This document shows positions 31,325-31,985 of a DNA stretch of 64,000 nt, piece by piece. Numbering within the stretch: the first letter of the stretch is position 1; the number at the start of each line of letters is the position of its first letter. Source of the stretch: Octopus sinensis (taxonomy: Eukaryota); contig NC_043008.1 in the NCBI RefSeq assembly GCF_006345805.1, forward strand, positions 59,396,001 to 59,460,000. Reading direction: 5' to 3'. The notes under the pieces are model-generated. The model saw only the letters and a list, made by a program, of their open reading frames with translations, was not told where the DNA came from and did no database searches. Made by a program: the position numbers and the translations under genes.

Positions 31325-31985
31325 AGGCGGCGAGCTGACAAAATCATGAACCTGCCTGGCAAAATACTTAGCGGTATTTCACTAAGGCGGCGAGCTGGCA
31401 GAAACGTTAGCACGCCGGGCGAAATGCCAAGCGGTATTTCGTCTGCCGCTACGTTCTGAGTTCAAATTCCGCCGAGGTCGACTTTGCCTTTCATCCTTTC
31501 GGGGTCGATTAAATAAGTACCAGTTACGCACTGGGGTCGATATAATCGACTTAATCCGTTTGTCTGTCCTTGTTTGTCCTCTCTGTGTTTAGTAAAGAAA
31601 TAGGTATTTCACTCGTCTTTACTTGCTGAGTTTAAATTCCGCCGAGGTCGACATTGCCTTTCATCCTTTCGGGATAGATAAATTAGGTACCAGTTGAGCA
31701 CAGGGGTCGATGTAATAGTTTTACCCCCTACCCCAAAATTACCTGCTTTATGTCACAATTTAATACCGATATTGAATATTTGTAGGACGGCGAACTAGTA
31801 CGATCATTAGCTCGCCACCATGCTTAGCGGCATTTCCTCCATCTTAACGTTCTGAGTTAAAATGCCGCCGAGGTAGACTTAGCCTTTCATCCTTTCGGGG
31901 TACCAGTTAAGCACTTGGGTTGATGTAATACATTTACCCATTCCCCCGAAATTTCTGGCTTTGTGCCAAAATTTAAAACCAATAT
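31325..31985 (+). mobile_element. Family E cluster including a young copy (31383-31602) inserted in an older copy
   Basis: TSD ggtatttcac at 31373-31382 and 31603-31612. Confidence 0.88.

Follow-up and report, generated by a model that had tools for sequence, protein, structure and literature searches.

Tails of one SINE family abut two fixed positions in the heads of related SINEs in a 64-kb window of the Octopus sinensis genome

Where does a short interspersed element (SINE) come to lie when its surroundings are themselves full of SINEs? The question is raised by 64,000 nucleotides of Octopus sinensis DNA (assembly GCF_006345805.1, contig NC_043008.1, positions 59,396,001 to 59,460,000 of the forward strand), hereafter the window, in which the 3' tails of one SINE family, here called E, are found again and again against the same two points of other SINEs. 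A sequence-only reading of the window had proposed that E inserts into its own copies at two fixed sites, the 3' end of its RNA priming on targets that resemble its own promoter region, and that the products seed satellites. We report below what became of the sites, of the priming and of the satellites.

Two positions against which E tails lie

The window is AT-rich and dense in related SINEs, with 51 matches to the head and core of E and its F-type relatives covering about 10 kb; one has to keep in mind that it is a single, SINE-rich sample. The E consensus, 234 bp long, was derived from the best copies in the window, and its coordinates are given below as "cons". Two sister families, F1 and F2, have cons 1–169 in common with E and differ in their 3' parts: the E tail reads ...GTAGTAAAGAAATA on the consensus, the E-specific part that follows the common core terminating in ...CCCCTTGTGGGTAGTAAAGAAATA, F1 ends in ...GCCAAAATTTGAAACCAATA, and F2 ends in ...CCTTGTGCCTATAGTAGAAAAGAATATT, of which the final ~15 bases are E-tail-like.

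The sequence after each SINE tail was mapped to this consensus, with the tail at 31602 added separately and each of two satellite-like arrays counted once. Eighteen E 3' ends were available, 12 of them abutting a SINE and six abutting non-SINE DNA. Eight of the 18 lie against cons 51 (^GGTATTTC; tails at 31602, 51691, 51876, 53343, 53514 and 57272, array 1 and array 2) and four against cons 18 (^RGAANCG; 29378, 33329, 34953 and 46474); none of the 18 tails in the window lies against any other SINE position. All 12 junctions are co-oriented, have an offset of zero and keep the complete tail. The insertion points are, as the sequence-only reading expected, anything but uniform along the consensus, and its two strand-specific self-sites in SINE heads account for 12/12 of the E-tail/SINE junctions; in the window, both the positions (12/12) and the orientation (12/12) of the targets are thus fixed.

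Every coordinate proposed earlier holds. The tail/GGTATTTC junctions, formerly placed at ~51690, ~51875, ~53515 and ~57270 and in both arrays, stand at 31602/3, 51690/1 (−), 51875/6 (−), 53514/5 (+) and 57271/2 (−) and throughout both arrays, with 53342/3 (−) as an addition to the list; the tail/RGAANCGTTAG junctions in the A-box, formerly ~29378, ~33325, ~34950 and ~46475, stand at 29378/9, 33328/9 (−), 34952/3 (−) and 46474/5. In pattern searches of the window, the junction-51 14-mer AAAGAAATAGGTAT, with up to two mismatches, matched 30 times vs 1.2 expected, and the position-18 junction pattern six times vs 0.07 expected; AAAGAAATAAGGAT at 2828–2841 was set aside as a chance match that is not a SINE. 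For 12 independent junctions to fall on at most two of ~170 positions, the probability is at most 1e-19 (an upper bound). The fixed-site junctions are therefore real and far beyond chance. The count of "about nine" insertions stands as far as the recurrence of the junctions goes; not all of them arose independently where they now lie, as the arrays and a dimer at 57 kb illustrate. Co-oriented clusters had been noted as well, and 26 of the 29 adjacent SINE pairs are indeed co-oriented.

As for the family itself, its head carries, as read from the consensus, an A-box-like TGGCAGAATCG (cons 14–24) and a B-box-like GAGTTCAAATTCC (cons 76–88), the former fitting the A-box consensus TRGCNNAGTGG at 9/11 positions. 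ARAGORN made no tRNA call over the window. A pattern check found no TTTT anywhere in the E consensus. Target-site duplications (TSDs) of 16 bp (copy at 28411), 17 bp (9889), 10 bp (31383) and 13 bp (57-kb dimer) were found, and those around 28411–28630, 9889–10068 and 31383–31602 show that E retroposes in the ordinary way; 5'-truncated copies begin at cons 10, 55, 97, 119 and 180. E has the SINE2 features tested, namely internal A and B boxes, and TSDs together with frequent 5' truncation. Cons 4–91 folds as a single long hairpin; its energy is −38.4 kcal/mol (z=−2.0), its apical stem counts 13 bp (34–46 with 51–63), and it has a loop at 47–50 and a bulge at 15–16. Cons 51 is the first base 3' of the apical loop, and sites 18 and 51 are separated by 33 bp, or about three helical turns.

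In-place nests, order of activity and target sequence

Whether the junctions arose by insertion is best judged at the following loci (strand in brackets):

31383–31602 (+): young full-length E with an internal 14-bp deletion, nested at cons 50/51 of an older F1-type SINE
31325–31770 (+): the F1-type host SINE, with common head and core and another 3' tail, split into 31325–31382 and 31603–31770
51671–52148 (−): composite of, in this order, head, filler, E copy a, unit b and fragment c
46241–46882 (+): E copy a (46241–46474), F-type b (46475–46676) and c (46677–46882), in serial abutment
46884–47126 (+): flank copy and uninterrupted F-type SINE (47017–47126), a stand-in "empty site" for the 17/18 insertion at 46241
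9872–10085 (−): solitary 5'-truncated E (cons 55–234, 9889–10068) in non-SINE DNA, with a 17-bp TSD
28395–28646 (+): solitary full-length E (28411–28630) at an ordinary non-SINE target, with a 16-bp TSD CTGTTGTGTTGTTTGT

The clearest case is the first. The TSD ggtatttcac, at 31373–31382 and 31603–31612, is host sequence on both sides of the insert and contains the host-specific 'AC'; the nest and its TSD are thus as proposed earlier, with the correction that the host is not an older E copy but a member of the sister family F1, with a different 3' tail. At 51.8 kb, an old SINE head (cons 1–30, 52119–52148) is followed by an AAAAT filler and the young E copy a (51876–52113), then by the older b (cons 51–234, 51691–51875) and the orphan c (cons 51–70, 51671–51690); copy a may be read as a nested insertion at 50/51 with loss of host positions 31–50. 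At 46.2 kb, the tail of E copy a lies against cons 18 of b, and b in turn against cons 18 of c. The E copy has three mismatches in its first 17 nt vs 8/217 in the remainder. The flank and SINE of 46108–46474 are duplicated at 46884–47126, where the SINE at 47017 runs through 17/18 unbroken and bears the signature AAAATGCTCAG common to units b and c. The 18-bp duplication seen earlier at 46475 is indistinguishable from homology between insert and host. In all, demonstrably in-place nested insertions number one to three only.

As for the duplication at 46–47 kb, 46100–46883 and 46876–47130 form an old tandem segmental duplication with flanks ~85% identical, its unit being a 140-bp flank, which holds a B-box-like GGTTCGAACTT, plus an F-type SINE, and its copy B decays downstream into a 22-bp minisatellite (47133–47282).

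Which partner of a junction came later can be judged from divergence. Substitutions in the upstream vs the downstream unit number 3/219 vs 17/184 at 57 kb (p 2.5e-4), 7/234 vs 15/184 at 51.8 kb (p 0.017) and 7/116 vs 22/184 at 53.5 kb (p 0.065, all one-sided Fisher), and wherever a young E copy takes part in a junction, it lies upstream (6/6). The age difference is partly a subfamily effect, so this polarity gives the order of activity rather than exact dating; it rules out insertion into the tail of the upstream copy, for which the downstream unit would be the younger.

The target sequence matters as well. GGTAT stands at cons 51–55 in 8/8 hosts occupied at site 51 vs 7/28 unoccupied copies (p=2e-4), and is absent in 5/6 hosts occupied at site 18. 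When the two sites are compared, TAGC^GGTATT vs TGGC^AGAATC, they yield the motif TRGC^RGWAT. A check of both strands of the consensus places this motif at cons 14 and 47 and nowhere else, and the window holds 20 intact unoccupied instances of it, ~16 of them in SINE heads; as the motif was derived from the two sites, only their mutual similarity counts as evidence. Outside SINEs, the 17-bp TSD GGTATCATTGTTTTTTT around 9889–10068 starts with GGTAT (GGTATC), which bears out the earlier remark that the non-SINE target at 9871–9888 reads tail/GGTAT; the chance of such a start among the six non-SINE tails is ~0.0065.

The tail of the incoming element matters too. F1-tailed SINEs abut 18 or 51 in 0 of 12–13 cases vs 12/18 for E (p=1.3e-4). 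F2 tails do use the sites: the one at 46675 abuts its host directly, whereas a filler of 6 nt intervenes at 29161 and one of 9 nt at 28970. That F1 never does so and that E and F2 do argues for an effect that follows the type of 3' end, which a partner enzyme would recognise, rather than a general fragility of the hosts. The hosts themselves are diverse: the downstream units are F1 (31603), F2-type (53224, 33219 and 46475) and of several E subfamilies, with mostly private substitutions, and arrays 1 and 2 differ at subfamily markers. The junctions were, thus, formed many times and do not descend from one dimeric master; indeed, the downstream units lack common diagnostic substitutions and are more diverged than the upstream units, and the single TSD pair that a dimeric master would leave is found at 57088–57490 only.

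The two sites also differ in the upstream units that use them. Cons 176 is C in those at site 18 (46241, 29162 and 34953) and G in those at site 51 (31383, 51876, 57272, 53399 and 34739), with the solitary copy at 9889, which has C176 and a GGTAT target, as an exception; judging from these bases, the choice of site may be inherited with the subfamily.

Among solitary copies, two begin at cons 55 and 56, and none in the window begins exactly at 18 or 51 except the ambiguous unit b at 57 kb. A further solitary E at 44627–44851 (region 44540–44930) lies between two copies of ccggaggcggagggatggttata(a/g)taatggtgatg; the locus is thus a local duplication or tandem repeat, within which no TSD of the copy's own is identifiable.

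Composite loci, a proposed route and its rivals

Three loci are more intricate:

57088–57490 (−): dimer of unit a (cons 1–234, 57272–57490) and unit b (cons 51–234, 57088–57271), with a single TSD pair
53171–53699 (no strand assigned): quasi-palindromic composite of four segments, with two tail/51 junctions and tails outward
28752–29584 (+): head-to-tail chain of four units, from tail mapping

The 57-kb dimer, with its young unit a and old unit b, is bounded by one perfect 13-bp TSD ATATTAGACACAA (57491–57503 and 57074–57086), and it was either built in register within an existing copy or inserted as a unit. In the 53-kb composite, the minus-strand segments are an F2 host from cons 51 (53171–53342) and E 180–234 (53343–53397), and the plus-strand segments E 119–234 (53399–53514) and an old E 51–234 (53515–53699); the two E fragments are joined at their truncated 5' ends, and each tail meets cons 51 of a different host. 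Such an arrangement could have arisen if a single break was primed on its two sides. Twin priming and insertion of one composite into another were also considered for 53.3–53.7 kb, and the flanks fit neither. The chain at 28752–29584 starts with an F2 unit (cons 4 to tail), a 9-nt filler and a second F2-like unit (from ~48–51), and goes on after a 6-nt filler with an old E (cons 18–234, 29162–29378) and an F1-like unit (cons 18/19 to tail, 29379–29584). A reading of the old E in it as a chimera of an old 5' and a young 3' half was rejected, as its 5' variants (GTCTTTACG) are an older state of the subfamily, common to 34739 and array 2.

The explanation that we favour, with conviction and doubt in about equal parts, is that E integrates site-specifically into the heads of resident related SINEs at two sequence-defined nick sites. 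E and those of its relatives that end in GTAG(T/A)AAAGAA(A)TA would be SINEs with a tRNA-like head that depend on a long interspersed element (LINE), and E RNA would enter the genome by target-primed reverse transcription, the copying of RNA from a primer that a nicked DNA strand provides. The endonuclease of the partner LINE presumably reads the motif and would nick the bottom strand at cons 50/51 or 17/18. Because the nick has a fixed position, the new copy would be co-oriented with its host and have its full tail against host 51 or 18. The 5' end could then be resolved in three ways: by a staggered second nick, giving a TSD (31383); by an upstream break, giving a small deletion and a filler (51.8 kb); or by pairing of the new cDNA with the host head, to which it is homologous, giving an in-register partial dimer, [1–234][51–234] or [1–234][18–...], without a new TSD, as may be the case at 57 kb, at 46.2 kb and in the seeds of the arrays. 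If annealing followed resection of the nicked strand, the upstream unit would be wholly new without a second nick or TSD, which would suit the 57-kb dimer; alternatively, a composite read-through RNA would have retroposed there, possibly 5'-truncated. Since E lacks a TTTT terminator, composites can probably be co-transcribed and retroposed too, and retroposition of 5'-truncated composites would also give upstream units that start at 97, 119 and 180. Partial dimers would then expand locally, by unequal exchange, into satellite-like arrays.

This proposal departs from the earlier one in how priming is achieved. Microhomology of the 3' tail does not work, as the priming strand would end in ...CGAAATACC-3' at site 51 and in ...CGATTCT-3' at site 18, neither of which pairs with ...AAAGAAAUA-3'; every junction, moreover, retains the whole tail and the whole target, and the sole possible 4-bp pairing, TTCT with AGAA, would lose the terminal AUA, which is always present. 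Recombination mediated by microhomology (GAAAT in the tail and at cons 39–43, or AGAA at cons 18–21) was rejected in its turn, for it predicts junctions unlike those observed.

Several observations weigh against site-specific integration into SINE heads. The two sites share only 6/10 identities (p ~0.02–0.05), and an unambiguous TSD is present at only one junction (31383). Further non-SINE targets (CTGTTG..., ATATTAG..., TACTG...) are off the motif, so the preference of the endonuclease is not strict. Within the window there is no LINE bearing the E tail and no partner LINE, which would end in ...CCTTGTG..TAGTAAAGAAATA; the only LINE-like open reading frame (ORF) of the window (13203–13727) has no Pfam match. 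When a peptide derived from E was searched against a protein database, the single match lay on an unrelated 543-bp ENA metagenome contig (L005) whose positions 172–401 are an E-like copy 89% identical to the consensus, and its tail abuts an F2-type SINE at ~cons 124; nesting positions other than 18 and 51 do exist, and the site rule is not absolute. Above all, no host head lies upstream of the new copy in about half of the cases (57 kb, both 53-kb junctions, 34952, 29161 and 29378), and these need an extra assumption, be it homology-assisted resolution, deletion of the target or composite retroposition. At 57 kb, in-register joining with the host head kept is excluded (P ~0.002–0.008), as the first 95 bases of unit a show no difference from the consensus (0/95) and unit b is 9% diverged. 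The head-less cases are what chiefly limits our confidence in this explanation to about half.

Other explanations have to be weighed against it. As E has no TTTT, RNA polymerase III (Pol III) would be expected to read through into the remainder of the host, and an extension of the transcript past the tail (GGUAUUUCG... or AGAAUCG...) could pair with other SINE copies and set the start of reverse transcription; the junction would then be self-perpetuating and the two sites founder accidents. This is the nearest workable form of the idea in the sequence-only reading, and we consider it unlikely. It would accommodate the single TSD pair of the 57-kb dimer, since composite RNAs may retropose, the orphan cons 51–70 fragment after 51691 as a possible copied 3' extension, the non-SINE target GGTAT as a 5-nt match to the extension, and the way in which the site tracks cons 176 (C at site 18, 3/3; G at site 51, 5/5); co-transcription with the target can also strengthen target-specific integration (PMC4494074). 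It leaves the likeness of the two sites unexplained, however, the right TSD copy at 31603–31612 is of the host type ('AC') with no extension copied, and the C176 copy at 9889 used a GGTAT target. Decidedly unlikely, in our view, is template jumping by the reverse transcriptase, in which SINE RNAs with 5' ends at cons 18 or 51, owing to processing or to a stop at the head hairpin, would be left by the enzyme for the 3' end of the next SINE RNA, so that a chain forms in a single event. Complete upstream tails, the fillers of 6–9 nt at two F2 junctions, the many downstream units without a host head, the one TSD pair at 57 kb, the hairpin with position 51 just 3' of its loop (z=−2.0), the starts of two solitary copies at 55 and 56, and a 5.8S pseudogene directly 5' of another SINE (50186–50343), which hints at chimeric retrocopies, are all in its favour. 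Yet it cannot yield the nest at 31383 with its TSD, the old head at 52119–52148 or the uninterrupted SINE at 47017; upstream units are consistently younger and a young E is never downstream; solitary starts at exactly 18 or 51 should outnumber chains, and there are none apart from the ambiguous unit b; and the GGTAT non-SINE target is unexplained. A template switch as a single-event origin is likewise contradicted by the host heads at 31325–31382 and 52119–52148 and by the age polarity.

It is also conceivable, at a low probability, that there is no targeting at all, and that a few dimeric or multimeric sources, or a SINE-derived satellite, spread by retroposition, segmental duplication or ectopic exchange, each copy inheriting the junction. 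The arrays clearly grew by local amplification at the DNA level, the 57-kb dimer was either moved or made in one piece, the 46.1–47.1 kb region is a segmental duplication, and squamate SINE-derived satellites have identical unit boundaries at many loci (PMC10702118); such a spread, however, does not sit well with downstream units that come from several E subfamilies as well as from F1 and F2 and whose substitutions are for the most part private, with array markers that differ and with unrelated flanks, it does not produce the de novo nest at 31383 with its own TSD, and it leaves the enrichment of the motif in occupied hosts unexplained. Least of all do we believe in structure-specific breakage, by which the head hairpin, extruded as a cruciform or not, would be nicked at its loop (50/51) and near its bulge (15–16, by 17/18), leaving a 3'-OH usable by any reverse transcriptase without an endonuclease. 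The hairpin does have its loop at 47–50 and its bulge at 15–16, the sites are about three helical turns apart (33 bp), and the outward tails at 53.3–53.7 kb resemble priming from both ends of a break; against this, F1-tailed SINEs are at the sites in 0/13 cases, insertion is strictly strand-specific, the non-SINE GGTAT target has no such hairpin, 17/18 is one base off the bulge and the z-score of the fold is modest.

A bolder version of site-specific integration, possible in our view and one against which we would still lean, is that a mollusc LINE/SINE pair reads the A-box-like TRGC^RG (tRNA positions 8–11) and so homes to the Pol III promoter heads of its own superfamily, and possibly to true tRNA genes, the resulting in-register dimers perpetuating themselves through read-through RNAs and seeding satellites directly.

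The 5.8S match mentioned above (50186–50343, +) is a diverged full-length one (Rfam, 92.8 bits, model positions 1–154) with no 18S or 28S adjacent. It is co-oriented with, and ~12–18 nt 5' of, a different tRNA-like SINE (50355–50720, +) that has a few other copies, e.g., 16717–17019; the pair could be a chimeric retrocopy or include a fragment of ribosomal DNA.

Satellite-like arrays, known systems and meaning

Two arrays, and the SINEs at the ends of the second, are as follows:

17355–19237 (+): array 1, with a first unit of cons 34–234, then ~9 units of cons 51–234 joined tail/GGTATTTC
33329–34952 (−): array 2, with a first unit (34739–34952) of cons 18–234, then 8 units of cons 51–234
34953–35088 (−): 5'-truncated E (cons 97–234), its tail meeting the first array-2 unit at cons 18; no host head precedes it
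33147–33328 (−): F2-type SINE that begins at cons 18, against which the final array-2 unit has its tail

Array 1 has a period of 184 and a higher-order period of 363, with five array-private variants in all units including the first; array 2 has periods of 177/353, and a private 3-bp deletion (cons 87–89) together with G114, T154 and A161 in all units, again including the first. As these private variants are common to all units, each array derives from one seed junction that was amplified locally. Both show what characterises SINE-derived satellites, namely an array of a SINE sub-region with a longer terminal unit, and homogenisation of the units. The earlier suggestion that the junctions seed satellites is, thus, upheld in that the array boundary is tail/51 and the first unit is long, with the qualification that each array goes back to one event and not to repeated insertions.

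The closest precedent for such targeting is SINEU-3/Tx1-Mar of crocodilians (Kojima 2015, PMC4494074), where the insertions of a SINE and of its partner LINEs are nearly confined to another abundant transposon family: a single Mariner family holds 90% of the SINEU-3 copies, with two preferred regions, each with a fixed orientation. E likewise has two preferred positions and a fixed orientation. Successive insertions of SINEU-3 leave tandem copies with a TSD sandwiched between them (PMC4494074), and the window has such a sandwich too: ATTGAATATTTGTAG stands at 31311–31325, 31771–31785 and 31984–31998, on the outer sides of two diverged F1-type SINEs and once more between them. This triplet points to re-use of one target site by a second SINE tail type. 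F1 or F2 tails are followed after 7–15 nt by the 5' end (cons 1–5) of a co-oriented SINE at 32929, 52161, 23645, 33157, 31771 and 61671, and as this spacing is that of a TSD, it suggests repeated insertion just upstream of the starts of resident SINEs. Unlike SINEU-3, E has its target in heads within its own superfamily, older E copies among them, so that co-oriented self-nests lead to partial dimers and array seeds; unlike the SINEU sites, which have no recognisable similarity, the E sites resemble each other, and the partner LINE of E is only presumed. Endonuclease-based insertion into a defined multicopy target is also the rule for Tx1L into Tx1D, and for Keno, Kibi and Koshi of the Tx1 clade (PMC4494074), whereas the specificity of E is partial, 6/18 tails being in non-SINE DNA, and its endonuclease again only presumed.

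As regards the arrays, the squamate SINE-derived satellites (Vassetzky et al. 2023, PMC10702118) are likewise tandem repeats of partial SINEs with a longer terminal unit toward the SINE terminus, with units of ~150–180 bp or double that length, a dimeric higher-order periodicity and homogenisation. Their start was ascribed to unequal recombination or to chance insertion at the same locus (PMC10702118); unlike them, the E array boundary tail/51 recurs at dispersed non-array loci and in one nest with a TSD, which gives a specific mechanism of seeding. SINE-in-SINE nesting and head-to-tail multimers that stem from the target preference of a LINE are also known from Alu-in-Alu insertions and other L1-driven multimers, such as the jerboa Dip/B1 (PMC10702118), although these use an A-rich linker or tail and the L1 target TT/AAAA, whereas the E sites, which are not rich in A, lie in the promoter head and are fixed to the single nucleotide.

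Two further systems bear on the rivals. R2 and related target-specific LINEs (cited in PMC4494074) are reported to use co-transcribed target sequence to fix the start of reverse transcription, and a read-through 3' extension of E would be a parallel, as a rival mechanism only. U6-L1 is a chimeric retrocopy made by template switching of the reverse transcriptase; the 57-kb dimer, a head-to-tail fusion within one TSD pair, is like it, and E is set apart from such a single-event origin by its younger upstream units, by the nest with its TSD and by the host heads that were kept.

OR1, an octopus SINE, has been placed in the CORE-SINE superfamily (PMC4824008). A local alignment of E with a mammalian MIR consensus scored no higher than shuffles. 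A SINE core stretch of 31–46 nt (cons ~93–137, CGACTTTGCCTTTCATCCTTTCGGGGTCGATAAA...) occurs at 89–100% identity in four JGI metagenome contigs (L001–L004) that are unrelated and have no further similarity to E, which suggests a SINE core domain conserved across taxa. In two metagenome scans the tail query gave no match and the core query short core matches only; a scan of viral contigs gave no match, and a full-text literature search with the core sequence found nothing. As for other repeats of the window, ORFs at 5352–6228, 11316–11798, 14801–15217, 49228–49710 and 58991–59876 repeatedly encode a peptide ...SFSFRLPNPLTRLWSARGYSRRHLPKVPRSGTEPGTMWL..., which appears to mark another abundant family, often beside microsatellites.

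What is new here is a target in the promoter-bearing head of the element's own superfamily, and nests that supply the exact unit boundary of two arrays. Should it be true genome-wide, the few target-specific SINEs on record would be joined by a self-targeting one, the co-oriented SINE clusters of the Octopus sinensis genome would have an explanation, and adjacent "SINE fragments" in the repeat annotation of genomes like it would be structured products rather than random debris. The origin of the first tandem junction has been a gap in the account of SINE-derived satellites; an array boundary that is the same as a dispersed junction ties the birth of a satellite to site-specific retroposition, and if the bolder reading, in which A-box homing seeds satellites directly, were true, it would provide a concrete route from interspersed to tandem repeat.

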